IMG/VR virus record: IMGVR_UViG_3300023174_000036
Location: 186,001-250,000 of that record
Reading direction: 5' to 3' (one strand)
Length of the DNA: 64,000 nt
The notes beneath the pieces were generated by a model, which saw nothing but the letters and a program-made list of their open reading frames with translations, did not search any database and had not been told where the DNA came from. Below, one piece after another: positions 22,419 through 63,888 of this stretch (positions are counted from its first letter, which is position 1; each line of letters opens with the position of its first letter). The translations under genes and the position numbers were made by a program.

Positions 22419-22426
22419 GTGTGCCT

Positions 22427-25625: not shown

Positions 25626-25654
25626 ATTATACTGCCAAACTGCGGTGTTGTCAA
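25626..25654 (-). promoter_or_regulatory. Consensus sigma70 promoter
   Basis: TTGACA-N17-TATAAT. Confidence 0.85.
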
Positions 25655-30299: not shown

Positions 30300-30301
30300 T
30301 G

Positions 30302-31567: not shown

Positions 31568-31568
31568 T

Positions 31569-34851: not shown

Positions 34852-34922
34852 TTTATTTTTTCTCTTATGTATAAATCGTTTGTATTTACGATAATACTTT
34901 TCTAAAACCGGCCGTATTGAAA

Positions 34923-35762: not shown

Positions 35763-36199
35763 TAAATCTTCTCGTAAGTTTGTGCAAATATATCTTTTTT
35801 GACTACCCCGTAGTCGTTCTCACCATGTCGAACAATAACATCTTCGCCTGGATTATAGTGTAACTTCTCACCCCATGATGTGTCAACTGATCCGGAACGA
35901 TCCGCCAACTTGGCCCATTTGACGATCTTTTTTGGTGTACAAACACCATCTCCCAAATCGTCTTTAAGATCGTCAAACCGTTCTGGACTGATAGGATATT
36001 GTTCTCCTTTGGGCCCGGTCATAATATAAAAACCTTTAGGATACTTGACTGGTCCTTCCAGTGTATCAATAGTGCCAGGTTTATCTGCAATCTCATAACG
36101 TTCTTTGGCAGGACGTTTGTAGGCTTTGAATCCACCGTCCTTGAACCAGTCGTCAGTGATATGCATACCTTCTACAATATTGATGTATTCACGAATCAT
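35762..36199 (-). CDS. PGDYG-like two-repeat protein
   Basis: Two repeats: TLEG...G.YI..GPKGEQYP and TSWG...GEDV.V......DIFAQTYE. Confidence 0.55.
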   Translation of the reverse strand: MIREYINIVEGMHITDDWFKDGGFKAYKRPAKERYEIADKPGTIDTLEGPVKYPKGFYIMTGPKGEQYPISPERFDDLKDDLGDGVCTPKKIVKWAKLADRSGSVDTSWGEKLHYNPGEDVIVRHGENDYGVVKKDIFAQTYEKI

Positions 36200-36891
36200 T
36201 TTCTATCTCCAAACAACTGTAACAAGTTGATAAACAAGTTAATAAAGTCCATGTACAGAGTCAGTGCTCCACGAATTTCTGCACTGTCACTAGTCTCTAC
36301 ACTTAGCTCTTCTCGAATTTGTTGTGTATCATAAGCAGTAAGTCCTAAAAAGATAATAATGGCTAGTGCAGAAATCACCATCTGCATCACAGTACTACCA
36401 ATAAAGATATTGACGATGCTGGCAATAACAATTGCAATTAAACCAACAAACATAAACTTACCAAGACTATCTAGACTCCGTTTGGTAAAATAACCATAGC
36501 CACTCATTACTGCAAACAAGATTGCCGCACCCATAAATGCACTAACAATAGATCCCATGGTAAACACTGCAAAAATTGTGGCAAAGCTCAGACCCATTAA
36601 TGCCGCAAAACCATGTAAACATAACTGCGCCACGCCCTTGCTAGGATTGTTACCTAACACAAAGCTAATACCAAAGATTGCGGCAAGTGGTGATAATATC
36701 ACAATCCATTTTATCCAGCCTGTAAAAAAGAATTCCAGCAACTCTGGACTAGTGCCAACAAAGTAGCTGACCATCATAGAAACAATAACAGCGAGACTCA
36801 TATGTCCGTACACACGGCCCATGGCTGAATTGATTTCAGCGGCGGATCTATAATTTAAAATTCCGCCATTTGTATAATTTGCACCAAACAT
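36196..36891 (-). CDS. Bax inhibitor-1/YccA family membrane protein
   Basis: About 7 TM helices; LTAYDTQ and ALTLYMDFINLF motifs. Confidence 0.9.
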   Translation of the reverse strand: MFGANYTNGGILNYRSAAEINSAMGRVYGHMSLAVIVSMMVSYFVGTSPELLEFFFTGWIKWIVILSPLAAIFGISFVLGNNPSKGVAQLCLHGFAALMGLSFATIFAVFTMGSIVSAFMGAAILFAVMSGYGYFTKRSLDSLGKFMFVGLIAIVIASIVNIFIGSTVMQMVISALAIIIFLGLTAYDTQQIREELSVETSDSAEIRGALTLYMDFINLFINLLQLFGDRK

Positions 36892-36902: not shown

Positions 36903-37268
36903 TTAAATAAATGGTTTGAGATTGGGCGTCACCCAGCCCACAGGTTTTAACACTTTTCCATCTTCACGCTTGCGAACCTTGCCCGTGTCGTGATCAACTT
37001 TGGCAAAGTTTGTCTTCATAACTTCTTTCCATGCACCTTCTGCATCCGACCCCATGCTATGGATAGCACCGATAGTGACAACCAAAATATCAATCAATGC
37101 GTCAAGTGTTTCCAATTGATCATTGTTGTCCACTGCAACTCTAAGTTCTTTGTATTCTTCATCAATAAGGCCAAGATACATTTTAAATTGTTCTTGGTCA
37201 AATTCACCTCCTGCGGTTTGATCGCAGGCCTTCATAAATTTTTCTTGATCTCTAAATGGGTTTGTCAT
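36903..37268 (-). CDS. MazG-like/PRA-PH NTP pyrophosphohydrolase
   Basis: EEYKEL...DALID...N..K...REDGKVLKP. Confidence 0.8.
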   Translation of the reverse strand: MTNPFRDQEKFMKACDQTAGGEFDQEQFKMYLGLIDEEYKELRVAVDNNDQLETLDALIDILVVTIGAIHSMGSDAEGAWKEVMKTNFAKVDHDTGKVRKREDGKVLKPVGWVTPNLKPFI

Positions 37269-37468
37269 TATGCCATCCTATCTACGTTTTGTCCTGCACG
37301 GTTCATCCGTCGGTTCATTTCAATTCTTGCTTCTTCGTTGGCTTTGAGATTTGCTTTTACACGTCTCTCTTCCAAACGCAGTTCTTCGTGCCGCTTGTCC
37401 AATTTTTTAATTTCTGTCTGACGATACATTTCTGCATTTTGTGCAGATACTCTACTGATTTCTGTCAT
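37268..37468 (-). CDS. Small coiled-coil protein
   Basis: 66 aa, coupled to the ligase stop; ends GQNVDRMA. Confidence 0.6.
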   Translation of the reverse strand: MTEISRVSAQNAEMYRQTEIKKLDKRHEELRLEERRVKANLKANEEARIEMNRRMNRAGQNVDRMA

Positions 37469-38790
37469 AGTTTTTCTCCTACTTCAAAGCCCCTGAACCG
37501 TAAGAACCTTGGAAAGCGCAAACTGTATGTGCCGTCTTGGTTCCTTGTAACGGCATCTGCTCGCACTTCCACGATCTGGCCAAGTAAGGAATCACGTGAA
37601 CTCCAATAACTATCGCGATCACTATCGCTAAAACCACTACCAACGTTGACTCGAATAGTTTTTCCGTCATCGACTCCTTGGCATACAATTGCTCCAAGGC
37701 GTCCAATATTTCTTCCTGTTCCTTCTTCGACATCTATCACCTCCAAAGACACTTCAATAAAAGGCTTCAATTTGAGCCATGCCACACTGCGTTTACATTC
37801 ATAAGGCGCCGCAGGATCTTTAATCATAATGCCTTCGTACCCGCCAGCCACTGCCTTTTGATTAATTTCTTTAAAACGTACTTGACCATCTGCTGTGTCC
37901 AAATCAACAAGTTCATGACCAACAACTGTGACATTGGGCAACATATCTTTATATGTTTTGTGCCAGTGGTAAATCATGTCACTACGAGTGGACTGATCTT
38001 TATCCCAGAATCCTTTTTCAAAATCTGCTAACGGTATTACGTCAAACAAGTTAAGCACAGCATCACCTGCTTCAACATTGTCCTTGCGGTGTACTTGTTT
38101 CATCAAGTCTTGAAAACTGGACGACATGATCTCACCGTCTAGCACAACATCTATATTTTGGTCAGTACCATGTGTTTTGACCACTGCACTAAGTTGTTCT
38201 ACAATGTGTGGAAAATTAGCAAGTTCTTTACCATTACGACTGAACATGTCCACCCGACCATCACTGCGTACAATAGTAAGTACTCTAACTCCGTCGAGTT
38301 TAACTTCGATAAGTTTTTTGCCTGATACCTTCGACTCATGATTAGCACTATCATGAGCAAGCTGACAACCGAATACAGGAATAGCATAGTCAGCATACTT
38401 CTTTTCCACTACTTTGTTAATTGTTTTTTCGCTTACACCACAGCGCAGGTCTTTGATCAAAATACGACGATACCAGCCATTCCATTCTTTTTGAGTAGCT
38501 GACTTCATCATTGCTTGAATCATGTCACGTGCTGTATTGCCTGTGACGTTGCGAGTAACGAAACCAGTAAGAGCGAGAGTAAAACTACTCCAAGGTAAGC
38601 CAGGCCCATCTTCATCTTTTTTCTCCGGAATTTGTTTGAGTCCAAAAGTAATCATAGGATCAAGAGCAAGGCGACACCCTTCAAAAAATTCATCACATTT
38701 TTCTTGTGCAATGACTTCGATAATGCCTTCTTTATCTAAACGTGAATTATGGGTTTCTAAATTCCAAATATGACTGGCACAAACGCTCAT
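37465..38790 (-). CDS. lig: ATP-dependent DNA ligase
   Basis: KLDGVR, DGE, EGIMIK, WLKLK motifs and OB-fold SLRFPRF. Confidence 0.95.
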   Translation of the reverse strand: MSVCASHIWNLETHNSRLDKEGIIEVIAQEKCDEFFEGCRLALDPMITFGLKQIPEKKDEDGPGLPWSSFTLALTGFVTRNVTGNTARDMIQAMMKSATQKEWNGWYRRILIKDLRCGVSEKTINKVVEKKYADYAIPVFGCQLAHDSANHESKVSGKKLIEVKLDGVRVLTIVRSDGRVDMFSRNGKELANFPHIVEQLSAVVKTHGTDQNIDVVLDGEIMSSSFQDLMKQVHRKDNVEAGDAVLNLFDVIPLADFEKGFWDKDQSTRSDMIYHWHKTYKDMLPNVTVVGHELVDLDTADGQVRFKEINQKAVAGGYEGIMIKDPAAPYECKRSVAWLKLKPFIEVSLEVIDVEEGTGRNIGRLGAIVCQGVDDGKTIRVNVGSGFSDSDRDSYWSSRDSLLGQIVEVRADAVTRNQDGTYSLRFPRFLRFRGFEVGEKL

Positions 38791-38822: not shown

Positions 38823-38851
38823 ATTATACAGAGTAATTATCAGTATGTCAA
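38823..38851 (-). promoter_or_regulatory. Consensus sigma70 promoter for the ligase operon
   Basis: TTGACA-N17-TATAAT. Confidence 0.85.
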
Positions 38852-39623: not shown

Positions 39624-40214
39624 TTATGGGCGTTTTCTAATGATTTCGTCAATCAAACCGTAGTCTAGAGCTTCTTGCGCACTCATAAATTTATCACGTT
39701 CCATATCGTGTCTAAATTGTTCGTAGGTCTTGCCCTTGCTATTATGATCCACATAAATCTGTGTCAAATTCTTCTTCATTTTAAGAATCTCTTCAACTTG
39801 GATTTCCATGTCTGTTGCTTGCCCACCTGCACCACCCGAGGGTTGGTGAATCATGTGTCTAGCACTTGGTAGCATCTTACGCTTGCCAGGAGCACCAGCA
39901 GTAGCAAGCAGACTTCCCATACTACAGGCTTGGCCCATAACGATGGTACTAACGTCAGGCTTAATGAATTGCATAGTATCGTAAATAGCCATACCAGCTG
40001 TGACTACACCGCCTGGACTGTTGATAAAAAATGTAATGTCTTCATTACCTTGACTCTCCAAAAACAAGAGTTGAGCTACCAGCAAACTAGCACTGTGCTC
40101 GTTTACATCTGTATCCAGCATAACAATACGATCTTTGAGAAGACGACTGTAAATGTCATAACTGCGTTCACCACGAGCTTCTTGCTCAATAACCATTGGT
40201 ACCAAATTAGGCAT
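39624..40214 (-). CDS. clpP: ATP-dependent Clp protease proteolytic subunit
   Basis: [27 protein letters not shown] and MERD motifs. Confidence 0.97.
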
Positions 40215-41198: not shown

Positions 41199-41227
41199 AT
41201 TATAGCGTACTCGTAGTCAAATGTCAA
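41199..41227 (-). promoter_or_regulatory. Consensus sigma70 promoter
   Basis: TTGACA-N17-TATAAT. Confidence 0.85.
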
Positions 41228-47977: not shown

Positions 47978-48196
47978 TTATAACCTATATGTTACACGAC
48001 CTTTTGATAAATCATAAGTGCTTACTTCCACTCGGACTTTATCGCCTAAAATAATTTTAATTTTGTGTTGTTTTAATCTGCCACCTAGATAAGCCAATAT
48101 GATGTGTTGATTATCGTCCAACTGTACTCTGTACATGTTACCAGGCAATACTTCAGTAACCTGTCCAGTTAATTCAAGTAGGTCGTCTTTGCTCAT
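47978..48196 (-). CDS. infA: Translation initiation factor IF-1
   Basis: 72 aa; G.V.EVLP...GD.V.VE.S.YDL.KGR.TYR. Confidence 0.95.
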   Translation of the reverse strand: MSKDDLLELTGQVTEVLPGNMYRVQLDDNQHIILAYLGGRLKQHKIKIILGDKVRVEVSTYDLSKGRVTYRL

Positions 48197-48363
48197 GCTT
48201 TGCTAATGATCATTTTTCCATCTTCCACCTGAATATTCAGCGTAGTACCTTCAACCCATCCTTGTGCTTCGCAAATCTCCGGTGGAATTTTCATCATGAC
48301 ATTATCCGGGTCTCCAGGAATATCTTCAAAAATTTCTTCTGCTAAAAATGTTAGTTTTTCCAT
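48193..48363 (-). CDS. AbrB/MazE-like small DNA-binding protein (not in ORF track)
   Basis: MEKLTF...MKIPPEICEAQGWVEGTTLNIQVEDGKMIISKA; TAAATA-N5-ATG. Confidence 0.65.
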   Translation of the reverse strand: MEKLTFLAEEIFEDIPGDPDNVMMKIPPEICEAQGWVEGTTLNIQVEDGKMIISKA

Positions 48364-48376
48364 AATAGTATTTACT

Positions 48377-48931
48377 TTATAGTTCTTCGTCTTTATAAGG
48401 AACTGGTCTCCATCCCAATCGATTTAAATCTAATTCAATTTCTTCAGTTACTTGACCTTCTGGAACATAGGTACGACCATCAGAGACATCCGGCACAGTT
48501 CCATCTAAACCATTGCCTAATTCTGGATTGCCAATACCGCTACAATACCAATCGATGTAGTCACCTTGCTCTCGCATGTCAGCAACAATACCGCCAGCAT
48601 GGCGCCAACTGCACGACCAGGTTTCACCTTTTAGTTCTTGCCAAAACTCTCTGCTTTGCCAATCCATGTTGCACATGGCCGCATACAAGTTTTGAGCATA
48701 ATTTTCACTGGCTTTGACTTTGTCGCACAGTTCTTTTGAACTACGGAGATCATACTCCATATTGTTCTTCTGCCACTTTGGATCTTCAAGATTGGCCACG
48801 TCTTGTTCTCGCCAAGATTTGTACATTTCTAAATATGCAGGATTGGGTAATTTGCCTTCTTCTTCACAGTGTTTGACATACCCTTCCTTTTGGAACGTAT
48901 GTCGCTCAGGACTTGATGCTATTTTTTTCAT
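48377..48931 (-). CDS. Hypothetical protein
   Basis: YAQNLYAAMCN...SWR.AG...A...GDYIDWYCSG. Confidence 0.7.
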   Translation of the reverse strand: MKKIASSPERHTFQKEGYVKHCEEEGKLPNPAYLEMYKSWREQDVANLEDPKWQKNNMEYDLRSSKELCDKVKASENYAQNLYAAMCNMDWQSREFWQELKGETWSCSWRHAGGIVADMREQGDYIDWYCSGIGNPELGNGLDGTVPDVSDGRTYVPEGQVTEEIELDLNRLGWRPVPYKDEEL

Positions 48932-49260
48932 TTGTGGAAATTGCCTTGGAAACAATGCCGGACTTCGTGACCTAAAGTATCGTGGTCAGTTGTTTTTGCA
49001 GTAATCACAGTACACATGTTAGACTTGTTTGGGGCAGGGTTAGACCAAAAAGAGCAACCGTCCATTTTTTGACCACTGCCTAACCTAGCGAACCCACCGT
49101 TGCCCCGATTTTTACTTTCAGTGTCGCAAGCTTCAAATACATTATCAACTTGTATCCACTTGATGGTACTAGTTGTAACAACATTAGAACTTGTTGAAAA
49201 CTGTTCGCCGGCTTGAACTGTTCCCACAAACATTAAAAATACTGCCAGTGCCTTTTTCAT
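48928..49260 (-). CDS. Secreted HExxH-containing small protein
   Basis: Signal peptide; LGHEVRHCF. Confidence 0.65.
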   Translation of the reverse strand: MKKALAVFLMFVGTVQAGEQFSTSSNVVTTSTIKWIQVDNVFEACDTESKNRGNGGFARLGSGQKMDGCSFWSNPAPNKSNMCTVITAKTTDHDTLGHEVRHCFQGNFHK

Positions 49261-49287
49261 TCTTGCCTCTTTCTGTGTGTGTTAAAA

Positions 49288-49398
49288 TGGTGTAGACGGT
49301 AGGATTCGAACCTACAAAGTCGCTCTAAGAGCTAGACCCTGACCCTCCGTTCGCCGAAGCTACTAGGAGGAGGTATACCAAGTTCCACTCACGTCTAC
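49288..49398 (-). tRNA. Atypical 111-nt tRNA-like RNA (Leu-like body, no canonical anticodon loop)
   Basis: Acceptor GTAGACG/CGTCTAC-A-CCA; T arm GTAGG-TTCGAAT-CCTAC; D loop GGAACTTGGTATAC; the anticodon position holds a 17-nt insert with a cUUCGg hairpin; long extra arm. Confidence 0.75.
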
Positions 49399-49404
49399 AG
49401 TTGT

Positions 49405-49433
49405 ATTATATACTTATTTGTAAATACTGTCAA
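49405..49433 (-). promoter_or_regulatory. Consensus sigma70 promoter for the tRNA-like RNA, overlapping a divergent TAAATA late promoter (49421-49426, +)
   Basis: TTGACA-N17-TATAAT on the minus strand; TAAATA-N6-ATG on the plus strand. Confidence 0.85.
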
Positions 49434-50404
49434 TGAGCTTTTCAACCATTCCTTTCCAAAATATTGTACGGTTTGGGCAACGCACAATGCTAGCCAAACC
49501 ATTGTTTTCTACCAGTTGGATTTTGGGTAGATTCTGTAACTATAATTGTAGTTACTGTTGGCCCTATGCTCGCAGTGACCGAATAGATCACCAACCACTT
49601 GAAGTGTATAAAGCCACGGTGGACGAGATTAAGCGTCAAGCACGAGCTAATGGATTCAACCAGTTTCATTGGTCGTTCAGTGGAGGTGAGCCTACTGCTT
49701 ACAAACAGTTGCTAGATCTAGTTAAACATTTGGATGAATTAGAATCCAAGTATCAAAGTATTCATATGACCACTAATTTGTCGCCTGGATCAAAATGGTG
49801 GAACACTTGGTGTCGGAATACTGAGATGTTACAACGTAGAAGTATCACTGCCAGTTTTCACGATGAGTTTGCTTGCGAACAAGAATTTGGCGACAAGTGT
49901 TTACAGTTGCAATACGAACTGGTACACGTTACAATCAATCAAGTAATGGTGCCCGAAAAATTTTACGAATTATATGATCGCATGGAGCGTTTTCATTCTC
50001 GCGGCATCAACGTTACATTGAAGCCTCAAAGCGATCCCACAGCGAGTGCGGTTGTTGACGGTTATACCAAAGATATGATGCATAAAATGCAAACAGGTTT
50101 CCCGCAACGTGCTAATGGTGAGGATGCTTATCAAATAGCATTATACGATGCTGACAACACCGAATACTTGTTTGACCAAGCAGAAAGATTTAATGCATTT
50201 GGATTTAACAAATTCACCAACTGGACTTGTAATGCCGGCTATCAAAGTGTTATAATAAGAGGTAATGAGGTTAAAAGAAGTTACAGTTGTCATGATGTGC
50301 CGTTAGGCACACTTGACAGCTTTGAATTATTCAAAGAACCCAAACGCTGTACTACTCCCAGTTGTGTTAGTAGTGCAGACTCAAAGATACCAAAATGCAA
50401 ATAA
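49433..50404 (+). CDS. Radical SAM enzyme (subtype B)
   Basis: W.LGRFCNYNCSYC, SGGEPT, C-terminal Cys cluster. Confidence 0.9.
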   Translation: MSFSTIPFQNIVRFGQRTMLAKPLFSTSWILGRFCNYNCSYCWPYARSDRIDHQPLEVYKATVDEIKRQARANGFNQFHWSFSGGEPTAYKQLLDLVKHLDELESKYQSIHMTTNLSPGSKWWNTWCRNTEMLQRRSITASFHDEFACEQEFGDKCLQLQYELVHVTINQVMVPEKFYELYDRMERFHSRGINVTLKPQSDPTASAVVDGYTKDMMHKMQTGFPQRANGEDAYQIALYDADNTEYLFDQAERFNAFGFNKFTNWTCNAGYQSVIIRGNEVKRSYSCHDVPLGTLDSFELFKEPKRCTTPSCVSSADSKIPKCK

Positions 50405-51687
50405 CCTTTAGAGACTACGTAAAAACATTTCCCAAACTTGAAAAAGAGTTTGATAATGCCGCTATGTGTGCTATGAAGTGGATCTATCTGTATGTGCATT
50501 TAGGTGAAGGAGTTGTTAAAGGATGCCATAATGTTCCTCACAGATATGTTACTAGTGATGACATTGCCAAGTACGGTAAGGACTTATTTACTAACAGCGA
50601 ATATGAAATTAATACACGCCGAGAAAAATTAAACAACATAAAAAATCCAGAATGTCAAAGGTGTTGGAGTAGCGAATCAAAAAATGTTCGTAGTTGTAGA
50701 TTACCAGAACCTTACTATAAAATGCATAGGGATCGTTTTCCAGAAATCACCAATGATTTAACCCCTATGCCAACTATGATAGAAATTGCATTTAATAATA
50801 CCTGTGATTTAAAATGTATATATTGCAGTAGCACTTTTAGTTCTCAGTGGCAAACTGAAGATAAAAAATTTAACATTGTATCTAAACAACAAGCCGTTGC
50901 CCCAGAAGGATTTGAAGATATATTTTGGCAATGGTTAGAACAAGACGGTTCAAATACCCTACTACAATATTATATTTTGGGAGGCGAGCCCTTAATACAA
51001 CCGGAGTTCTATAATTTCATAGACAGGTTTATCCCTTTAATAAAAGCTAATCCAAATAAATTCAACGTTAAACCTGAATTAGTTATTCTTACCAATGGCA
51101 ATACACCTGAAAAATATTTAACTAAGTGGTTTGAAAAAATAAAAGAATTAAATGAAGTAGTGTCTATTCAATTTCATATCAGCATTGAAGGATACGGAAA
51201 CAAAGCAGAGTACATCAGAACTAATTTAGACTGGGATAGATTTTCCAGCAACGTGGATAAAATATTAGAATTTTCTAAATCAGGTGCAAGTGAAATTAGA
51301 TTCAGCATTACACATTCAGCTATGAGTATTACTAGTTGTTTAGACTTACTACAGTGGATAAAAAAATTATCGGATAAACACAGCATTGATGTAGATTTAA
51401 TTCGAACTAGTGTTGTTACTCCAGAACATCTTGCGCCTTGCATGTTAACTCCTAATTTTAATACCTACATAGATGAAGTGTGTTCATGGATAGAAACTGA
51501 TGCTCCCAAATGGAATCACTACATTGATTTTTTAAAAGGCATTGGTAATAGTTTTGGAAAACACTCTGTTGCCGATTTAAAAAAATTTACTGCATGGGAG
51601 CAAGATATGGTAAGCCGAAGAAATTTTAAAACTAAAGAAACATTCCCTGAGTTAGCTACATGGCTAGAGTATTGCAATGAAAATTGA
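50395..51687 (+). CDS. Radical SAM enzyme (subtype A)
   Basis: N-terminal C..KW...C...CQRC; CDLKCIYC; GGEP. Confidence 0.9.
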   Translation: MQITFRDYVKTFPKLEKEFDNAAMCAMKWIYLYVHLGEGVVKGCHNVPHRYVTSDDIAKYGKDLFTNSEYEINTRREKLNNIKNPECQRCWSSESKNVRSCRLPEPYYKMHRDRFPEITNDLTPMPTMIEIAFNNTCDLKCIYCSSTFSSQWQTEDKKFNIVSKQQAVAPEGFEDIFWQWLEQDGSNTLLQYYILGGEPLIQPEFYNFIDRFIPLIKANPNKFNVKPELVILTNGNTPEKYLTKWFEKIKELNEVVSIQFHISIEGYGNKAEYIRTNLDWDRFSSNVDKILEFSKSGASEIRFSITHSAMSITSCLDLLQWIKKLSDKHSIDVDLIRTSVVTPEHLAPCMLTPNFNTYIDEVCSWIETDAPKWNHYIDFLKGIGNSFGKHSVADLKKFTAWEQDMVSRRNFKTKETFPELATWLEYCNEN

Positions 51688-52291
51688 TACCGAACACTTA
51701 CACTATTGGATGCAGGCTATTAGGCAAAGCCCAGACCCTATGCGGACTATGGATGCTTTTTGGTCAGGACAAATTAAAAGTAAAGAGTGGCTGATCAATT
51801 CGTTAGAGTTAGTTGTACATCCTCAAGTTGATTGTAAATTGCCCAAGCCTTTTTCTATAGACATTCACGGTGGGTGGGTTGGTGTTCTTGCTAGCATGAT
51901 ATTTCAAAGTAGGATACCGGTTGCTAATATTCGAAGTATTGATATAGACCCTACTTGTGAATCCATTGCCACAATGATGAACAAGGGTGAAGAAATAAAT
52001 GGCAAGTTCCGTGCAGTAACTTCAGACATGTGTGCTATACGAAGCGATGCAGATATTGTTATCAATACCAGTTGCGAACATATTACACAAGATCAGTATG
52101 ACTTGTGGAAAAGTGGAATGCCTCATAATAGTATACTTGTCTTACAAAGCAATAATTATAATATTCCCGAACATGTTCGCATTGCCAATAGTTTAGAAGA
52201 ATTTAAACAACAATGTGATATCAATGTACTATGGTCTGGAGAACTAGAATTACCTTTATACAAACGATGGATGATTATAGGAAAAGTATAA
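51677..52291 (+). CDS. Class I SAM-dependent methyltransferase-like protein
   Basis: GGWVG.LA, SIDIDP and INTSCEH motifs. Confidence 0.7.
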   Translation: MKIDTEHLHYWMQAIRQSPDPMRTMDAFWSGQIKSKEWLINSLELVVHPQVDCKLPKPFSIDIHGGWVGVLASMIFQSRIPVANIRSIDIDPTCESIATMMNKGEEINGKFRAVTSDMCAIRSDADIVINTSCEHITQDQYDLWKSGMPHNSILVLQSNNYNIPEHVRIANSLEEFKQQCDINVLWSGELELPLYKRWMIIGKV

Positions 52292-53181
52292 TGGAGTATG
52301 AAATTTACAACAACAAACCTGGAATTGAAATTGTATTTTCTAACGGCTTTGAAAATATTAGTTTGTTTTATGCAATTTATGATTGGCCAGCTGCCACTAA
52401 GTTTTACAAGTTGTTAACCGATGCTATCAATAATAAAAATTCATTTATAAGTGATACTAGTTTCAATGTATCTGAACACGATGAAGTTGTACTATTAAAC
52501 ACCATAAACGATACAGTTGATAAAATAAACAAAAAATACAAAATCAATATTCCTGTAATTACATCAGACTCAGATTTAAATTTATTGCATAGAGCAACTG
52601 TTCCTGTTAATTGTGAGTTGTGGAAAATTATTAATGACAGTATACATTCTTATGAACAATATAAGATTCAAATTAATAGTGAGCCACGTGTTAACGCATA
52701 TTTTAGATTTGAGCCTAGAAATTTAATCCCATTAAATAAAGAAGATTTTTTATTTTTTAAAGCTGACAGAGAGTTTGGCGACTTATGCATGAACTATACC
52801 CATAAGGGAAAACATTGGTTAGAATTACAATCCGATAACGATCCTGATAGTCTAACTGATGGTCAATTGCAAGCAGAAACACATTTAGAAGCAGGAGGCT
52901 ACTTGGTATTTAGACCCCCAAGTCCGAATCCTTTTTATCGTTTAAATAAATTTATACAATGGTTTAATAATGCATGTCCGGGAAAATCCGTAACATCCGA
53001 GATGGCCGTTGGATATTTGTTACTGGGTAAGATGGTGATGCCACAATCTTGGAATGGCTTCTACGTTCCGGAAAGATCTGATTGGGTTAGAAGGTTGTGC
53101 AATTATAAAACCATTATAGGTATAAATTTAATTACAATCAACGATGTACCGTCGTTATTAAAAAAATCTAAGATAATATGA
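52291..53181 (+). CDS. Uncharacterised radical-SAM partner protein
   Basis: Similar to the N-terminal half of 31569-33617; start MEYEIY overlaps the upstream TAA. Confidence 0.7.
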   Translation: MEYEIYNNKPGIEIVFSNGFENISLFYAIYDWPAATKFYKLLTDAINNKNSFISDTSFNVSEHDEVVLLNTINDTVDKINKKYKINIPVITSDSDLNLLHRATVPVNCELWKIINDSIHSYEQYKIQINSEPRVNAYFRFEPRNLIPLNKEDFLFFKADREFGDLCMNYTHKGKHWLELQSDNDPDSLTDGQLQAETHLEAGGYLVFRPPSPNPFYRLNKFIQWFNNACPGKSVTSEMAVGYLLLGKMVMPQSWNGFYVPERSDWVRRLCNYKTIIGINLITINDVPSLLKKSKII

Positions 53182-54185
53182 AACCAATTGCTATTGTTAA
53201 TTTTAATCATAACGACTATTTGTATATCACATGGTCGTTAACTTCTACTTGTAATTACGAATGCAATTATTGCTGGCCAAATGCTCACGATGGAAAACAT
53301 AGATTTCCTATAAATTTAGATTTAATTTGTAAGAATATAGAACATTTGATATCAACTTACAAAACTCACTTTAATAAAACAAATGTAAGATTGTCCTTAG
53401 CAGGCGGCGAGCCAACGTTGTGGCCCGAATTAGGAGAGTTCGTTAAACGCATACACGAATCTACCGGTTGTCGTGTTACACTTAATACTAACGGTTCACG
53501 AACTATACGGTGGTGGAAAGAGTATGCCAAATATTTTGACGATATACAGATTAGCGTACATCGAGAACAATGCGATGTTGCTCATGTTATAGAATTATTA
53601 GATTTGATATACAAAGAAACAGATGCGTTCTGTGCAGGCCGAGTATTGATGGATCCACTAGCGTGGGACGTTAGTATAGGTATGTTAAATCAATTAGTCA
53701 ATCATCCAACTCCTTGGCTTGTTAAAACTGTATTACTCACTGATCCGTTAACTGGTGAAGTAATGACAAATTATCAAAATGAACATTTTGATTTTATGAG
53801 AGACACTGTTAAAAAACGCCCGTCCGACGAATATGTAATGCGCATGAAAAATGCTGGTAAGATAGATGAGACTGATAAAAAAGAAGCAAAGGTAATATTT
53901 TCAAATGGTAACGAAGAACCTTATGATTCTTTCCGCTTAATGGAAAATGGTTGGAATAAATTTTATGGATGGGATTGCAATGTAGGTCTTGATCGTTTGG
54001 GAATTAATTATGCAGGCGAAGTAGAAGGCAACTGCGGCGAAAAGATTTTTAATACAAGTTTAAATATAAACGATCCTAATTTTATTTCTAAATTCAAACC
54101 CGAGTTAGTTGCTCCTATTAAATGTAAGAAGATATGGTGTGATTGTACATCTGATATAAGAATTACAAAACAGAAAAATGTATAA
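53178..54185 (+). CDS. Radical SAM enzyme (subtype B)
   Basis: W.LTSTCNYECNYC, GGEPT, C...C.C..D. Confidence 0.9.
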   Translation: MKPIAIVNFNHNDYLYITWSLTSTCNYECNYCWPNAHDGKHRFPINLDLICKNIEHLISTYKTHFNKTNVRLSLAGGEPTLWPELGEFVKRIHESTGCRVTLNTNGSRTIRWWKEYAKYFDDIQISVHREQCDVAHVIELLDLIYKETDAFCAGRVLMDPLAWDVSIGMLNQLVNHPTPWLVKTVLLTDPLTGEVMTNYQNEHFDFMRDTVKKRPSDEYVMRMKNAGKIDETDKKEAKVIFSNGNEEPYDSFRLMENGWNKFYGWDCNVGLDRLGINYAGEVEGNCGEKIFNTSLNINDPNFISKFKPELVAPIKCKKIWCDCTSDIRITKQKNV

Positions 54186-55149
54186 TTTACAAGATATCAA
54201 AGTTATTCATTTAGAAGTAACTAGCAAATGCCAAGCTAGTTGCCCAATGTGTGTACGTAATATCCGCGGCGGAGTAGACAGTCCTGATTTAAAAATTTCT
54301 GAAATTACTTTGGATCAATTTAAAAAATGGTTCTCTGTTGATTTTATAAAACAATTAGACAAAGTTTATATGTGCGGCAATACAGGAGATCCGATACTTG
54401 CTAAAGATACTTTGAGCATATTTGAATACTTACGTACAGTTAATACAGAATTAGAGCTTAGTATGAATACAAATGGCAGTGCCAGAGATATAAAATTTTG
54501 GCAAGGATTGGCGGAATTAAAAGTTGCAGTTAGATTTGGAATTGACGGCATGAATGATACTCATAGTCTTTATCGAATTGGTACAGATTGGAATAAGGTT
54601 ATACACAATGTACAAACTTTTATAAACAACGGTGGCTATGCAGTGTGGGACATGTTAATATTTGACCATAACAAACACCAAGTTGATGCCTGCGAACAAC
54701 TAAGTCGTAATCTTGGTTTTGCACAATTTGTAACAAAGAACACAAGTAGATTTCAAAATGATAATCTTACTGTGTTAAATAAAGACGGTACAATAAGTCA
54801 TATACTAAAACCTTCTATTAAGAGTAAACAGATTACTGAGAAGTTATCGGAGCAAGAATCTGTTATAACTTGTAAGGTAAAAACGCCTGGCAGTTTATAT
54901 GTTAGTGCCGAAGGAAAGATTGCTCCATGTTGCTGGTTGGATTTCAATGCTATTTCTAGCAATGCTCCTAGTCATGCAGATTTTATTAGCAAGGGTTTTA
55001 ATAATCCAAATTTGCATATACAAGATTTGAAACAAATATTTGACAACGACTTTTTTACAAGAATAGAACAATCTTGGACAAAAAACCCATTACGTGCTTG
55101 TAGTAGACAGTGCGGCAAGGTAGATAAATTTAATGAACAATTCAAATAA
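54178..55149 (+). CDS. Radical SAM enzyme (subtype C)
   Basis: LEVTSKCQASCPMC; PCC...CSRQC. Confidence 0.9.
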   Translation: MYNLQDIKVIHLEVTSKCQASCPMCVRNIRGGVDSPDLKISEITLDQFKKWFSVDFIKQLDKVYMCGNTGDPILAKDTLSIFEYLRTVNTELELSMNTNGSARDIKFWQGLAELKVAVRFGIDGMNDTHSLYRIGTDWNKVIHNVQTFINNGGYAVWDMLIFDHNKHQVDACEQLSRNLGFAQFVTKNTSRFQNDNLTVLNKDGTISHILKPSIKSKQITEKLSEQESVITCKVKTPGSLYVSAEGKIAPCCWLDFNAISSNAPSHADFISKGFNNPNLHIQDLKQIFDNDFFTRIEQSWTKNPLRACSRQCGKVDKFNEQFK

Positions 55150-56443
55150 AACATTTTGTCCGCTACCGTTTATACACATTGCTACTCGTCCTAACGGCGA
55201 CGTTCGTGTATGCTGTACAGCCAACGCTAGTGGCGCAGGCATTATAGATATTAAGGACGCAGGCTTAGTTAAGGAAGGCACTGAAAATTTAAATCTTAAA
55301 ACTCACACTATTAGCCAAATATGGAACAGTCAGTATATGAAAAATATACGATTGGACATGCTGTCTAACAAAATTCCATCCAGCTGTGAAAAATGTTTTA
55401 AAGAAGAAACACAAGGAATTAAAAGTAAACGTAACTGGGAAACACAAGTATGGTCCGAGCGTTTAGATTTAAAATCAATTGTGGATCAGACAGCTGGAGA
55501 CGGATCTCTACCTGTTTCTATTCCCTACTTTGATTTACGATTGGGAAATCTTTGTCAGTTAAAATGCATTATGTGCAGTCCACACGATAGCAGTAGTTGG
55601 ATTAAGGATTGGAAGGTACAATTCCCAAAATATAAAATACAAGAATTAAAACAAGATCAAAGTTGGAATATAGATTTTGATTACACATGGTATCAAAAAG
55701 GATCTTTTTTAGAAGATATGCGTTCAAACGCATCCAATATTAGAGAGTTATATTTTGCAGGAGGCGAACCGTTGTTAATACCTGAACACTATAAGATTTT
55801 AGAGTTCATGGTAGAAACAGGAGCCGCAAAATTATGCGTTATACGTTATAATTCTAATGGTTTAGAATTGCCTGAAAAATTATTTGATTTGTGGAAATAT
55901 TTTAAAGAAGTTAAATTTAATTTTAGTGTGGATGCCGTAGGAGATCGTAATGACTATATTCGCTATCCTAGCAAGTGGAATAATGTTGTTGCAAATTTAG
56001 AAAGGTTAGATGATACCCCGGATAACATCACTGTAAACATAGCGTGTGCGGTGCAGTTGTTAAATATATTGTCTGTGACAGAGTTAGTACATTGGAAGGA
56101 AACTAAAAACTTTAAAAAAGTTAATAAGGCACCTTACGGCGCTGGATTAATTGGAACACATTTGGTATATCTTCCTAGCTATTTAAATGTAAGGGTACTA
56201 CCTAAACATCTAAAAGACCAAGTAGCGGCTCAAATTGATTATTTTTGTTTTAGACAATCGAGGAACATAGAATTCCAAGATAATCCTTACGGCCAACAAC
56301 GATGGCAAGGCCTAGTTCGATACATGATGGCAGAAGACTGGTCCAGCAAATTGCCAGTAACTGTTGAATATTTAGAGCAATGCGATCAACAGCGTGGAAC
56401 TGATTTTAGAACTATTTTTCCAGAATTGGGTGCAGTGCTATAG
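55133..56443 (+). CDS. Radical SAM enzyme (subtype A)
   Basis: CPLPFIH...CC...CEKC; CQLKCIMC; FAGGEP. Confidence 0.9.
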   Translation: MNNSNKTFCPLPFIHIATRPNGDVRVCCTANASGAGIIDIKDAGLVKEGTENLNLKTHTISQIWNSQYMKNIRLDMLSNKIPSSCEKCFKEETQGIKSKRNWETQVWSERLDLKSIVDQTAGDGSLPVSIPYFDLRLGNLCQLKCIMCSPHDSSSWIKDWKVQFPKYKIQELKQDQSWNIDFDYTWYQKGSFLEDMRSNASNIRELYFAGGEPLLIPEHYKILEFMVETGAAKLCVIRYNSNGLELPEKLFDLWKYFKEVKFNFSVDAVGDRNDYIRYPSKWNNVVANLERLDDTPDNITVNIACAVQLLNILSVTELVHWKETKNFKKVNKAPYGAGLIGTHLVYLPSYLNVRVLPKHLKDQVAAQIDYFCFRQSRNIEFQDNPYGQQRWQGLVRYMMAEDWSSKLPVTVEYLEQCDQQRGTDFRTIFPELGAVL

Positions 56444-58540: not shown

Positions 58541-59189
58541 CGAAGAATTTGAAAGGGCAATGTTATGGAACAGCTTAACAAATTTAGGAAGCTATGCTAA
58601 ACTGGATCTGAGAATAACTGAAACTGTTGTCACAAAAGATTTATTAAAGTTTTCTGAAAACTGGTGTCCTTACAATGAAAAAAAAGATGTACACAATAAT
58701 CGCTGGGGACTCCCAGTAACTAGTCATACTGGCGACGTCATGGATAATTACCATCTTAATAGTTTTGGTTATATGCAAAAATATCATGACGTAGAAATGA
58801 AGGAAGAAAACTTTACAACTCCTACGGATGTATATCATGCAATACCAGAAATTAAAAAACTAGTTGATGTGTTTGCTCCAGATATTGGCAGAGTTCATAT
58901 ACTAAAAGTAAATCAAGGCGGCTACTTTCCTCCCCACAGAGATTTTGCAGGAGTTGCGCCGGAGTATTTTCGACTGTCATGTGTTTTTGGAAGCTGTTCA
59001 GATTTTAATTACGTGCAAACATTACACGATCAAATTTTCAGGCCAGAACGCAGTCATTTATATTTTGTTAATTTTCAATTAAACCACAGCGTTTTTAGTT
59101 TTTCAGATAACTTATATAATCTAATCTTAACAGTTAAATTGAATCGTAGAACACATGATTTGGTTATCAAACATTCCATGTCAAAATGA
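58533..59189 (+). CDS. AspH-like 2OG-Fe(II) oxygenase
   Basis: GR.H.L....GGYFPPHRD...H.VF. Confidence 0.7.
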   Translation: MTNEEFERAMLWNSLTNLGSYAKLDLRITETVVTKDLLKFSENWCPYNEKKDVHNNRWGLPVTSHTGDVMDNYHLNSFGYMQKYHDVEMKEENFTTPTDVYHAIPEIKKLVDVFAPDIGRVHILKVNQGGYFPPHRDFAGVAPEYFRLSCVFGSCSDFNYVQTLHDQIFRPERSHLYFVNFQLNHSVFSFSDNLYNLILTVKLNRRTHDLVIKHSMSK

Positions 59190-60100
59190 AACTAGCTTAC
59201 GCCGATACTGCTAAAGAAAATTGGTTCCTAGTTGCATGGACGTTGTCAAACAAATGCAACTATCGCTGTAGCTATTGTCCTTCATATCTCAATGATGGTA
59301 GCACTGGACAACCTGATTGGCCGGTGGTTGAACAATTTGTAAACGGATTTGATATTCCTGGCAAAACAATTTGCTACAGGATAAGCGGCGGCGAACCCAC
59401 TTATTGGAAACATTTTTTAGACTTGGCTAAACTAGTTAAATCAAAAGGTCATCAGTTTACTTTCTTAACTAACGGTAGCCAAACAGTTGAGTATTATAAA
59501 GAAATTAGTAAATTTTCTGACGGTATCATGATTAGCTACCACGACGAGTATGCTGATATCGATCATATCATCGATGTTGCTAATGCTGTTGAATGCGTAG
59601 TAGTTGTTAATTTAATGATGGTACAAGACAAATTTGATCACATGGTTGGAATAGGTCAACAGTTGTATAAAGGAACTGACAAGTTGGCCATATGGCCCAA
59701 AGTAGTTTTAGATAAAACCAGCGGCGAGTTCGTAACTAACAAAGTAAGCGATTATACCGACGAACAAAAAGCCATCATAAAATCTTGGCCTTATTTTAGA
59801 AAAATTGATGATTCGAAAATACATAGAGGAGCTTTGTTACTTGATAATGTTCCAGTAACAGGAAACGACATTATAGTAAAAGGTCTAAACAATTACAAGG
59901 GCTGGGACTGCTGGGCAGGCGTAGACATGCTGAGTATCGACATGTGGGGTGATGTGTATCGAGCTGAATGTAAACAAGGCGGCAAGCTGGGTAATTTAGC
60001 TAATTACAATTTGCCAACTGAAACTATAACTTGTCCTGCTAACAAATGCAGTTGTCTTAGCGATATCTATCTTCAAAAAGAATCCAAAGTTACTATATAG
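59186..60100 (+). CDS. Radical SAM enzyme (subtype B)
   Basis: W.LSNKCNYRCSYC, SGGEPT, C...CSC..D. Confidence 0.9.
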   Translation: MKLAYADTAKENWFLVAWTLSNKCNYRCSYCPSYLNDGSTGQPDWPVVEQFVNGFDIPGKTICYRISGGEPTYWKHFLDLAKLVKSKGHQFTFLTNGSQTVEYYKEISKFSDGIMISYHDEYADIDHIIDVANAVECVVVVNLMMVQDKFDHMVGIGQQLYKGTDKLAIWPKVVLDKTSGEFVTNKVSDYTDEQKAIIKSWPYFRKIDDSKIHRGALLLDNVPVTGNDIIVKGLNNYKGWDCWAGVDMLSIDMWGDVYRAECKQGGKLGNLANYNLPTETITCPANKCSCLSDIYLQKESKVTI

Positions 60101-62458: not shown

Positions 62459-62861
62459 GTAGCTTTATTAATATTTCTTCGTTACTGTACAGTCCCACAT
62501 TATCCCAATCTATCATATATATTTTATCATCATCAATTATAATATTACTTAGTACCCAGTCATAGTGAGCATAAGGTGCAGTTTGTTTAATATTATCTAA
62601 ACAAAATTTATATATTTTTTTTATGAAATCAGGACTGTGAGGAAATTTGTTGGCAGTAACTCCTGATATTTTTTTAACCTCTACCCACATCGTATCATGT
62701 GACCATCCGTATTCCTTTATGTAGTCGGGCCATATTGTCTTCATAATGTTAACATGATTAATTAAAAGATCTATATCTTTATATTTCCAAACTTTTTTAT
62801 AAGAATTTGGAAGCTCATATACATCTCTCTGTTTTGCAGGAGTTGATTTAATTAAGACCAT
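62406..62861 (-). CDS. APH/protein-kinase-like phosphotransferase
   Basis: HYDWVLSNII...IDWD catalytic-loop and Mg-binding motifs. Confidence 0.7.
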   Translation of the reverse strand: MVLIKSTPAKQRDVYELPNSYKKVWKYKDIDLLINHVNIMKTIWPDYIKEYGWSHDTMWVEVKKISGVTANKFPHSPDFIKKIYKFCLDNIKQTAPYAHYDWVLSNIIIDDDKIYMIDWDNVGLYSNEEILIKLHADLKSAFGEKFDPASI

Positions 62862-63888
62862 ATGCTGTTGCTACTTCTGGCAAGTAGTCTCTAATATTAA
62901 TTTTCCGCCAACTATCTAATGCTGATATTTTAAATTTAAAATGTTCGATCATTTTTTCATCTGCAACACCCGCAGACCAGTTTCTTACCGAATTACTTTG
63001 ATACTGATCTTTAAGTCGTTGAGGAGCATTTTTGCAACTAAGCCATGCCGGACCATTTAAAATATTTTCATAGTAACCAAAATTATTTTTATCAGCATAT
63101 TCTTTTATATCATCAGTAAAGCTGGCATTGAGAACACTGATAGTAGGAGTTAAATCAACTTTGCAAAAATCTGCGTACCTATGAGCATTTTCATTTATGA
63201 CATCCCAGTTACTTCCGTATCTAATATAATCTATTCGTTTGTCGACTGCATCCAAACTTAATGCCATTAATACATTATTAAATTTCCTAAGAATTTTTTC
63301 AAGTTTTGGATTCCATATTGTACAATTTGTATTAAATCGTAGCGCAACACTGCTATCTAATCTTTCTAAAAATTCTGGTAGATGCCGGACCATCATGGGT
63401 TCGCCACCCGTTAGATAAACTTCTTTCATTTCAGCAGTTTCAATTTTACGAAATGTTTCCTCAGAAGCCCAGTTAAAATTGGGAATTTCTAAAATTCCAT
63501 ATATAGGCGCAGTTCCAGATTGTTGCATATCAATTGCTTCTTCAGCAATACTACTGCTACTCATTTCCCAACAGCTAATACATTTTAAATTACAACTATT
63601 TCCAAATCTCAAATCAAAATGACTCAGCCCGGGCCCATAAGGACGAGTCTTTTGACGTTGACTTTGTATTCCTTTTTCTTCTAAATTTTTACAAGGATGG
63701 CATGCTTCTGGCCAGATTTCGAGATCTAACTGTTTTCTGATATCTGTATGGAAATCACTGTCATGCCACTCTTGGGGAGTATGGGTATGTACAGTTTCTT
63801 TGTTAGTTGATTCTACGCTAACACAGCATAGCCGATATTGTCCGTCGGATCTTATACACGTTTGATGTTCTAAATATTTACATTTCAT
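62848..63888 (-). CDS. Radical SAM enzyme (subtype A)
   Basis: C...CC...CHPC; CNLKCISC; TGGEP. Confidence 0.9.
   Translation of the reverse strand: MKCKYLEHQTCIRSDGQYRLCCVSVESTNKETVHTHTPQEWHDSDFHTDIRKQLDLEIWPEACHPCKNLEEKGIQSQRQKTRPYGPGLSHFDLRFGNSCNLKCISCWEMSSSSIAEEAIDMQQSGTAPIYGILEIPNFNWASEETFRKIETAEMKEVYLTGGEPMMVRHLPEFLERLDSSVALRFNTNCTIWNPKLEKILRKFNNVLMALSLDAVDKRIDYIRYGSNWDVINENAHRYADFCKVDLTPTISVLNASFTDDIKEYADKNNFGYYENILNGPAWLSCKNAPQRLKDQYQSNSVRNWSAGVADEKMIEHFKFKISALDSWRKINIRDYLPEVATAYGLN

Follow-up and report, generated by a model that had tools for sequence, protein, structure and literature searches.

A probable non-decoding RNA gene with a class II tRNA body and its own promoter in large uncultured phages

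The stretch of DNA studied here (the window) is 64,000 nucleotides (nt) long and covers positions 186,001-250,000 of IMG/VR record IMGVR_UViG_3300023174_000036. A tRNA-like RNA of 111 nt is encoded on its minus strand (49398..49288), and the sequence matched exactly the string given for it in an earlier reading of this DNA (the original prediction). As judged by comparison with homologous sequences, the locus is very probably a selected gene for a non-decoding RNA with a class II tRNA body. The elements of the locus are listed below, where A1 is an alignment of 92 distinct homologue sequences, with a structure specified by us, and R1 is the covariance model built from A1.

49405..49433, minus strand: sigma70-type promoter with -35 box TTGACA (49433-49428), 17-nt spacer and -10 box TATAAT (49410-49405), 12/12 match
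49404-49399, minus strand: discriminator ACAACT, 6 nt, which puts the predicted +1 at G1 (49398)
49288..49398, minus strand: anticodon-less class II tRNA-like RNA, from G1 to CCA, the sole R1 match in the window (122.7 bits, E = 7e-34)
49392..49398, minus strand: 5' strand of the acceptor stem, nt 1-7, GUAGACG, pairing with CGUCUAC at 49292-49298 over 7 base pairs (bp)
49371..49389, minus strand: D arm, nt 10-28, with an irregular stem and the loop GAACUUGGUAU, a Leu-type D loop with an AA doublet and the invariant GG
49344..49370, minus strand: anticodon-position arm, nt 29-55, with the base CCUCC/GGAGG (5 bp), internal loop UAGUA/GAAC, GC/GC (2 bp) and a UUCG tetraloop
Between the anticodon-position arm and the variable arm, minus strand: four unpaired nt, 56-59
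49317..49339, minus strand: long variable arm, nt 60-82, with 5 bp, a 2-nt bulge, 4 bp and a UUA loop
Directly 3' of the variable arm, minus strand: U83, putative position 48
49299..49315, minus strand: T arm, nt 84-100, GUAGG-UUCGAAU-CCUAC, with a canonical loop; 100% paired in A1, 2 pairs changed on both sides
49288..49298, minus strand: 3' strand of the acceptor stem (49292-49298), discriminator base A73 (49291) and encoded CCA (49288-49290)
49261..49287, minus strand: 27-nt spacer of the phage's standard 5' untranslated region (UTR) type (UUUUAACACACACAGAAAGAGG...), which runs up to the start codon of the following gene

The T arm of 5 bp with a UUCRANY-type loop, the 7-bp acceptor stem and the discriminator base with CCA are those of a tRNA, the long base-paired variable arm is that of a class II tRNA, and the leucine identity elements (A73 and the equivalents of A14/A15, G18G19 and U48) are present. 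The D loop is similar to that of T4 tRNA-Leu. The D stem of the window RNA is irregular and consists of A10-U28, G11-C27, U12.C26, G13.A25 and G14.U24. Pair 12:26 is mostly U.C and is C-G in 5 sequences of a diverged group, pair 14:24 is G.U with U-A in three sequences, and U8, A10, G11, A15, G20, G21, C27, U28, U83 and A108 are invariant in A1. Two conserved G.U pairs lie in the base of the variable arm. The sequence and the family alignment thus agreed with the original prediction that the acceptor stem, T arm, Leu-like D loop, A73 and CCA are intact. A C[TA]G bulge had also been drawn in both central arms. In the variable arm the bulge has a fixed position and a varying sequence (UA, UU, UG, CA, AA), and the diverged group has an internal loop instead. 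For the anticodon-position arm the internal loop UAGUA/GAAC is the better reading; the two pairs formerly drawn at that bulge never vary and are neither supported nor refuted. The internal loop AGUA/GAA of the window RNA lies between Watson-Crick pairs and resembles the bulged-G (loop E/sarcin-ricin) consensus.

Homologues were gathered from IMG/VR phage contigs as three independent collections: loci anchored on the neighbouring radical-SAM protein, of which more than 600 relatives exist (L001-L080), loci with an exact 25-mer spanning the T arm and acceptor, and loci matching a D-arm pattern. The family comprises 234 instances in 234 loci, with 133 distinct sequences of 95-119 nt, and is carried by large uncultured myovirus-like phages, mostly from freshwater. 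The RNA was present in about 60 of the 80 protein-anchored loci, a collection that is independent of the RNA sequence and therefore has no construction bias on the D and T arms. Among the 92 sequences of A1, 88.7% of cells form standard pairs, and 17 of the 31 pairs were changed on both sides. The mean of the shuffled alignments was 10.6, none of the 500 shuffles reached 17, and controls with slid pairing partners gave 2-8. The covariation score was 0.246, compared with 0.03-0.07 for slid partners. The covarying helices are the acceptor, the base of the anticodon-position arm, the variable arm and the T arm, and RNAalifold independently recovered the same four. All 7 acceptor pairs are 100% paired and 4 of them have changes on both sides, 4 of the 5 pairs at the base of the anticodon-position arm covary, and 6 of the 9 variable-arm pairs changed on both sides with 89% of cells paired. 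At least 15 different acceptor-stem sequences occur across the family, all of them pairing. The covariation check proposed in the original prediction therefore came out in favour of both the variable arm and the base of the anticodon-position arm, and its argument that intact stems speak against decay is strengthened by four helices that covary beyond the shuffled and slid controls.

Family members scored 62-123 bits under R1, whereas the real tRNAs tested scored at most 39 bits, with 39, 37.8, 35 and 29.6 bits for a phage tRNA-Tyr, T4 tRNA-Leu, the tRNA-Leu(tag) of locus L210 and T4 tRNA-Ser, respectively. R1 gave no match in relatives without the RNA. ARAGORN called 0 tRNAs and 0 transfer-messenger RNAs (tmRNAs) in the 64-kilobase (kb) window. 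Rfam 15 gave no match to the RNA at the gathering score, and the best sub-threshold hit was tRNA-Sec with 20.2 bits against a cut-off of 47. A tRNA-Sec (RF01852) identity, which calls for an 8/5 acceptor/T geometry, a 6-bp D stem and a UCA anticodon, was rejected on this score, on the 7/5 geometry of the RNA and on its lack of an anticodon; the copy in L210 had no Rfam match at E <= 1. Folding of the single sequence was uninformative (z = -0.83), and the minimum-energy fold mispaired the D and T arms. Since neither single-sequence folding nor the detectors were informative, the case rests on comparison. An exact scan for the T arm and acceptor over 185,579 genomes gave 0 matches, so a host tRNA as parent was rejected.

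It was expected in the original prediction that tRNAscan-SE or ARAGORN would return an undetermined or pseudo-tRNA call. ARAGORN was run and made no call in the window; undetermined labels did appear on some short variants. In all, 29 short variants were labelled as tRNA, and 72 of the instances tested were labelled in intron mode. These labels are what a decaying tRNA pseudogene, or a decoding tRNA misread owing to an intron or an unusual loop, has in its favour, and we consider either a most improbable explanation of the family. The calls on near-identical bodies disagree (Pro, Ser, Gly, Gln, Arg, Leu and undetermined 4-base 'anticodons') and arise by breaking G-C pairs of tetraloop hairpins. 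Because six amino acids and 4-base 'anticodons' fell on near-identical bodies, the calls were rejected as artefacts. Against decay or decoding there are also the stems kept by compensatory change, the conserved promoter geometry, and minimal arms too short to accommodate an anticodon. Ordinary tRNAs occur in the same phages, and those with tRNA clusters have tRNA-Leu (three anticodons), tRNA-Tyr and tRNA-Ser. The labelled members of 95-101 nt include L006, L086, L096, L102, L115, L126 and L165, among others, and public phage annotations may carry such spurious tRNAs.

The segment that joins the arm base to the variable region takes 51 distinct forms, hairpins of 4-14 bp closed by UNCG, GNRA or CUUG tetraloops or by one of a few recurrent loops. 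None of the 51 arms, and none of the 133 distinct sequences, has a 5-bp stem with a 7-nt anticodon loop at the tRNA position. The replacement of the anticodon loop by a hairpin, which the original prediction described for the window copy, is therefore a property of the whole family. The shortest arms have 4 bp and a CUUG loop, in RNAs of 95-96 nt; further classes have 6 bp with UUCG, UUUG or UUAG, or 10 bp with a tetraloop. In relatives with the window type of arm, GCAA or GUAA can take the place of UUCG within an unchanged frame. Longer arms carry the recurrent loops ACCCC(C), GUAAC(A/G)AAC and CCAUA on covarying stems, and the arms of the diverged group are capped by GNRA loops. An intron that is removed to give an ordinary tRNA had been named as a refutation of the original prediction, and this was not borne out: the minimal arms of 4 bp with CUUG have no room for it, and none of the contigs derived from RNA skips the anticodon-position arm. 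A splicing model was excluded on the same grounds. Mimicry of a Shine-Dalgarno or anti-Shine-Dalgarno sequence by CCUCC/GGAGG was rejected as well, since family members do not consistently have GGAGG as the 3' strand, and the two strands are both base-paired.

The distal arm is swapped wholesale, while the variable arm changes by compensated point substitutions and the body is kept. In one pair of loci, with a neighbouring gene 99.2% identical, RNAs of 101 and 118 nt differ by an exchange of the arm between near-identical bodies. Such swaps, together with the recurrent loops on covarying stems and the internal loop AGUA/GAA common to two arm classes, could be taken to mean that the RNA is a natural tRNA scaffold, in which the body gives processing, a defined 3' end and nuclease resistance, and the hairpin at the anticodon position is the active part that binds a protein or an RNA. 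We consider this distinctly improbable. Eight of the 51 arms (21 of 92 sequences) are a bare stem of 4-6 bp with a tetraloop and three more are a plain 10 bp with a tetraloop, and all of these keep the full body and promoter. Because the minimal-arm members do so, the body appears to function without a payload.

In 104 of 106 distinct contexts and 59 of 59 others (163/165), exactly 6 nt separate the end of the -10 box from nucleotide 1, and the spacer is mostly 17 nt. Nucleotide 1 is always a purine: 127 of the 133 sequences begin with G and 6 with A. The perfect TTGACA-N17-TATAAT promoter ending 6 nt before G1, as originally described, was found with 12/12 matches, and its geometry is fixed across the family. 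The window contains four perfect promoters of this kind, where about 0.008 would be expected by chance (64 kb, both strands), and all are on the minus strand:

25626-25654, minus strand: perfect TTGACA-N17-TATAAT promoter
38823-38851, minus strand: perfect TTGACA-N17-TATAAT promoter
41199-41227, minus strand: perfect TTGACA-N17-TATAAT promoter
49405-49433, minus strand: perfect TTGACA-N17-TATAAT promoter, that of the RNA

The promoter of the RNA is thus the standard strong type of this phage and is not unique to the RNA. The other three are followed directly from +1 by short unstructured leaders of the type (A/U)UUUAACACACA..AGAAAGG..AUG. The promoter and the UUUAACACACA..AGAAAGG leader look like the early-promoter and leader cassette of the phage, and the RNA looks like a module inserted between +1 and this standard leader. 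Positions +1 to +4 after CCA are U in 81-93% of the contexts in the main group. No terminator was predicted between the RNA and the next gene. The RNA folds as a closed domain, and no pairing with the downstream leader or its ribosome-binding site was predicted either; riboswitch-like control of the next gene was rejected for lack of such an alternative pairing.

This layout would also suit a module that acts in cis. The fold would stay on the transcript and bury the triphosphate end in the acceptor stem, shielding the early operon RNA from Rho and from 5'-end-dependent decay (RppH and then RNase E, or RNase J); alternatively, it would serve as a punctuation mark for processing, as in tRNA-mRNA co-transcripts. 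In established work on E. coli mRNAs, 5' stem-loops ceased to protect when a few unpaired nucleotides stood in front of the stem. In 163 of 165 contexts the RNA stands first in its transcription unit without an unpaired nucleotide at its 5' end, the next gene follows with no terminator in between, and contigs from RNA runs extend from the RNA into variant downstream UTRs. A cis-acting stabiliser is the reading that best explains the strict absence of a 5' leader. A simple hairpin would be enough for this purpose, however, and the conserved elbow, A73, CCA and long variable arm would stay unexplained, while the three other perfect promoters of the window drive plain unstructured UTRs. As described below, the next gene in two loci (L210 and L185) is a tRNA only 2-10 nt away, where RNase P would sever the RNA from it at once. 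On the whole we consider the cis reading unlikely.

Downstream of the RNA, the operon runs in the order of a variable protein of about 110 amino acids (aa), a protein of about 180-190 aa, a MazE/AbrB-like protein, an IF-1 homologue and two phage-only proteins. Its members with coordinates in the window are as follows.

48928..49260, minus strand: operon gene 1, a 110-aa protein with a signal-peptide-like N terminus, very variable among relatives
48193-48363, minus strand: MazE/AbrB-like 56-aa protein, adjoining the IF-1 homologue in the operon headed by the RNA
47978..48196, minus strand: IF-1 homologue, the fourth open reading frame (ORF) of the operon (PF01176, E = 1.1e-21)

A homologue of the 110-aa protein, which had no informative family match, was found 23-210 nt downstream of the RNA in 67 of 94 contexts, and 71 of 94 contexts had the IF-1 homologue downstream, in the same orientation as the RNA. 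Of 153 instances, 142 have the radical-SAM gene upstream in divergent orientation; 11 have a different gene there and keep the downstream genes. The link to the radical-SAM genes made in the original prediction is therefore one of gene order only, and a functional coupling to that island as a general rule was rejected, because the RNA stays with the downstream operon and its distant relatives lie in tRNA clusters. The ATG of the radical-SAM ORF (49433) overlaps the -35 hexamer of the RNA's promoter, with no visible Shine-Dalgarno sequence before it. Transcripts of the radical-SAM operon would need a start site within the RNA gene, which lies on the opposite strand, or beyond it.

In the distant relatives L210, L185 and L205, the RNA lies in or beside phage tRNA clusters and keeps its own promoter 6 nt upstream. 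In L210 it stands with a TTGACA-N17-TATACT promoter inside a cluster of 23 tRNAs, with tRNA-Ser(GCU) 2 nt after its 3' end; in L185 tRNA-Ser(GCU) follows after 10 nt, and in L205 an ORF and then tRNA-Ser(GCU) follow. Because these relatives place the RNA before a tRNA or an ORF, the constant unit is the promoter, the tRNA-like RNA and ACCA, while the following gene varies. A stabilising mRNA leader, one of the functions offered in the original prediction, does not fit as a general function, and a mere mRNA leader can be ruled out as such because tRNA-Ser(GCU) directly follows in the distant relatives. L210 also encodes, at 5581-5665 on the plus strand, a tRNA-Sec-shaped RNA (RF01852, 45.9 bits; cut-off 47) with the loop CUUGAAA and the anticodon UGA (Ser), not UCA. 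Its neighbours are tRNA-Met on one side and the promoter of the anticodon-less RNA on the other; it has no ARAGORN call and resembles the 'allo-tRNAs'.

Two metatranscriptome assemblies (X17 and X18) contain the RNA, and its summed word depth is above that of the flanks (up to 119 over the T arm and acceptor, 0-16 on the flanks), a point in favour of its expression. These assembled contigs show its presence in RNA libraries. One X18 contig joins G1 (49398) to 49499, which is 66 nt inside the radical-SAM gene, and skips 100 nt with the promoter and the gene start. It probably stems from a relative with a different intergenic arrangement.

The 3' tail is ACCA in 131 of the 133 distinct sequences and ACCG in two (L185 and L223), and A73 is invariant. 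E. coli leucyl-tRNA synthetase (LeuRS) recognises A73 and the D-loop architecture and reads neither the anticodon nor the acceptor pairs. By these rules the RNA should be chargeable by LeuRS, which is the most plausible synthetase for it because A73 is invariant, the acceptor pairs freely covary and the D loop is of the Leu type. Pair 3:70 is A3-U70 in the window copy, and A3-U70 or G3-C70 in most members. Five distinct members of the 92 have G3.U70 with A73, the alanine identity pair (L081, L087, L117, L123 and L149, as well as others among the instances) and apparently represent an intermediate state on the way from one of A-U and G-C to the other. Given these five variants and the two ACCG tails, the charging identity does not seem to be tightly policed.

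These features bear on an improbable role as an aminoacylated player outside the ribosome. Charged with Leu, or with Ala in the G3.U70 variants, the RNA would be a donor for a transferase (leucyl/phenylalanyl-transferase, Fem, cyclodipeptide synthase or another phage enzyme yet to be recognised) or a sink for LeuRS or EF-Tu. The nearly invariant A73 and CCA with covarying acceptor pairs are the pattern expected for LeuRS, the D loop is of the Leu type, tRNA-Leu of T4 and L210 is among the top-scoring real tRNAs under R1, and the phage encodes ClpP. Among about 50 ORFs scanned, however, no aminoacyl-tRNA-dependent transferase or synthetase was found, G3.U70 and the ACCG tails are tolerated, and under R1 Leu tRNAs scored no better than Tyr, Pro or Cys tRNAs, which were about equal. 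The radical-SAM genes, as gene order only, lend this role no support.

The overall reading we favour, at a little less than an even chance, is that of an early non-decoding tRNA mimic acting in trans through its tRNA body, possibly as a decoy for tRNA-directed defence. Its core, an early non-decoding tRNA mimic, was already proposed in the original prediction and has been reinforced by the lack of an anticodon loop in 133 sequences, the covarying stems and the fixed sigma70 geometry. Action in trans through the tRNA body is, judged from the sequences, slightly more probable than not, because of the tRNA neighbours in L210 and L185, the closed fold and the other promoters that need no such leader. 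That the RNA is specifically an anti-defence decoy is possible and, on the same kind of evidence, doubtful.

For the favoured reading the following course can be proposed. Host sigma70 RNA polymerase would start at nucleotide 1, as the promoter geometry suggests, and from this start the 5' end would be mature but triphosphorylated, with no need for RNase P. Transcription would continue into the mRNA or, in the distant relatives, into tRNA-Ser(GCU), as the gene layout implies. The conserved ACCA points to release at or near CCA by the host tRNA 3'-end machinery. In L210 and L185, release through the RNase P cut at the next tRNA would be nearly unavoidable, and elsewhere RNase E and exonucleases would act in the U-rich trailer. 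The freed RNA would then act through its acceptor stem, A73-CCA, D/T elbow and long variable arm, posing as a tRNA to host proteins that do not read the anticodon, while a nuclease needing the anticodon loop should find nothing to cut at the closed anticodon position. The preferred targets would be defence or toxin enzymes directed at tRNAs and binding the tRNA body; to these the RNA would offer an abundant early pseudo-substrate. Candidates are PtuAB of Septu and retrons, which cut the variable arm of the class II tRNA-Tyr, and Toprim nucleases of the OLD/PARIS type. The variable-arm stem of tRNA-Tyr is where Septu and retron-Eco7 cut, and overexpression of a phage tRNA-Tyr gives the host tRNA partial protection (PMC13096335); P2 OLD severs the anticodon arm (PMC12445682). 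The arms cut by such enzymes, the anticodon and variable arms, are the arms that change in the family, and the body is kept. In its most explicit form, which must be regarded as decidedly doubtful, the RNA would be an RNA-only countermeasure, produced in large amounts with a 5' triphosphate as infection begins, and would jam immune nucleases or toxins that recognise the tRNA body (PtuAB of Septu and retrons, OLD/PARIS-type enzymes, acceptor-end modifiers), with the arms as exchangeable cassettes and decoding left undisturbed.

Several points weigh against this reading. Published phage tRNAs rescue by replacing the cut tRNA and need a matching anticodon (PMC12445682). A pure decoy must compete with the whole cellular class II tRNA pool. 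The strict lack of a 5' leader is not needed by a decoy in trans and is predicted by a 5' stabiliser in cis, and hypervariable arms fit relaxed constraint on any stable hairpin as well as they fit an arms race. The invariance of the D and T arms is partly there by construction, as two of the three collections were built with patterns from those arms. Searches of Atlas, Pfam and PHROG yielded no partner protein, p192, p222 and p230 being phage-only hypotheticals. The evidence from RNA runs is weak: it consists of assembled contigs only, and the word depth given above adds up relatives and favours conserved segments; another RNA run has the whole region at flat depth, and one contig extends into the promoter, so that DNA carry-over or read-through is possible.

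The phage itself is a large, uncultured one from freshwater, and related contigs are 116-356 kb long. Searches of INPHARED by blastn and megablast with the locus, a 20-kb stretch and two diverged copies found no relative at the DNA level, and a search of the E. coli genome was likewise negative. Its proteins include a T4-type baseplate (baseplate-wedge connector), cyanophage-like fibres and one protein in common with PA5oct-type jumbo phages. The size of the 3290-aa ORF had raised the possibility of an N4-like phage with a virion RNA polymerase, a possibility rejected once the ORF was matched to tail-fibre proteins of cyanophages. The radical-SAM ORFs number at least 10, several of them with SPASM domains; they lie on both strands and are accompanied by genes for a 2-oxoglutarate-Fe(II) oxygenase and Asp/Asn hydroxylase-like proteins, an unusual concentration for a phage. 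Further features of the window are the following.

5139-9686, minus strand: 1515-aa ORF matching a virion structural protein
9686-19558, minus strand: 3290-aa ORF matching cyanophage tail fibres
20212-20772, minus strand: Fe/Mn superoxide dismutase, host-like auxiliary gene
21396-22505, minus strand: UV endonuclease UvdE, host-like auxiliary gene
29244-34932, minus strand: radical-SAM ORFs
36196-36891, minus strand: Bax-inhibitor-1 family membrane protein, host-like auxiliary gene
36903-37268, minus strand: MazG-like pyrophosphohydrolase, host-like auxiliary gene
37465-38790, minus strand: ATP-dependent DNA ligase, host-like auxiliary gene
39624-40214, minus strand: ClpP protease, host-like auxiliary gene
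49433-56443, plus strand: radical-SAM ORFs
59186-60100, plus strand: radical-SAM ORF(s)
62848-63888, minus strand: radical-SAM ORF(s)

Non-decoding viral tRNA mimics are already known, and a search of the literature turned up no account of a phage tRNA-like RNA of this type that lacks an anticodon. The 3' tRNA-like structures of turnip yellow mosaic virus and brome mosaic virus and the tRNA-like RNAs of murine gammaherpesvirus 68 are virus-encoded mimics that engage host tRNA enzymes without decoding. The likeness is one of analogy only, as hosts and polymerases differ and these are pseudoknotted 3' ends of RNA genomes or RNA polymerase III units fused to pre-miRNAs. The murine gammaherpesvirus 68 RNAs form the 5' element of a longer transcript and are freed by tRNA processing. 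The bacterial Y RNA YrlA, which is bound with Ro/Rsr, is likewise non-decoding, with a tRNA-like elbow and a shortened stem at the anticodon position. It differs from the family in a closed acceptor end that continues into the Ro-binding helix, without a free ACCA, and the family has no Rfam match. The tRNA-like domain of tmRNA shares with the family the anticodon-less mimicry, the acceptor, the T arm and CCA, and the few variants with G3.U70 and A73 recall it further. Unlike tmRNA, the family has no tag reading frame or pseudoknots, is 95-119 nt long and has full D and variable arms, and the ARAGORN search for tmRNA was negative. The engineered tRNA scaffold has the same design, with a stable hairpin for the anticodon stem-loop on a tRNA body, but it is a laboratory device; the family is natural, and its minimal-arm bodies are also conserved.

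Class II tRNAs (Leu, Tyr, Ser) share the 7-bp acceptor, A73, CCA, the D/T elbow and the long variable arm with the family, and over 33 nt the 3' third of the RNA shares 91% identity with the tRNA-Tyr of T4-like Aeromonas phages. Phage tRNAs are known to counter tRNA-cutting defences, with tRNA-Tyr of T5 and T6 acting against retron-Eco7 and Septu and tRNA-Lys of T5 against PARIS. The T5 tRNAs are expressed early and strongly (PMC13096335), to which the early strong promoter of the RNA may be likened. In contrast to class II tRNAs, the family has no anticodon loop and so cannot replace a cut tRNA, its D stem is irregular, its variable region is longer (28 nt, 9 bp and a bulge), and its 5' end would be made by initiation, not by RNase P.

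The closest precedent is the T4 species 1 RNA (rnaC). Together with the species 2 RNA (rnaD), it belongs to the small stable RNAs in the T4 tRNA cluster, which like the family are phage-encoded, tRNA-sized and non-decoding. With its canonical GGUUCGAAUCC T arm, rnaC shares a tRNA-like end with the family; it was the only non-tRNA touched by R1 (16.9 bits, E = 0.027), a score carried by the T arm, and blastn found nothing between the two. A location in a tRNA cluster is shared with L210, L185 and L205 but not with the window, which has 0 tRNAs in 64 kb. rnaC differs in its length of 139 nt, its imperfect acceptor stem, the lack of an encoded CCA and its position, which is the far end of the cluster rather than immediately after a promoter. 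The family for its part has a complete class II cloverleaf except for the anticodon loop, a start fixed at nucleotide 1 and no detectable sequence homology to rnaC beyond the T arm.

Every known phage-tRNA countermeasure to tRNA-cutting immunity works by replacing the lost decoder, and the family cannot decode, although selection maintains it in hundreds of phage genomes under the strongest type of early promoter. It thus suggests that phages put the tRNA shape to another use, one independent of the anticodon, be it as decoy, aminoacyl carrier or scaffold. If it is a decoy, this would also suggest a role for the T4 species 1 and 2 RNAs, which have been unexplained since the 1970s and on which the family offers a comparative handle. 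The RNA is a clean, small and easily synthesised object for testing tRNA-directed defences and anticodon-blind synthetases. For annotation there is a pitfall, as tRNA finders miss the family or assign arbitrary anticodons to its short variants. Among the known viral mimics, what is new in the family is the complete class II body, the cassette-like arm, the start at nucleotide 1 and its breadth.

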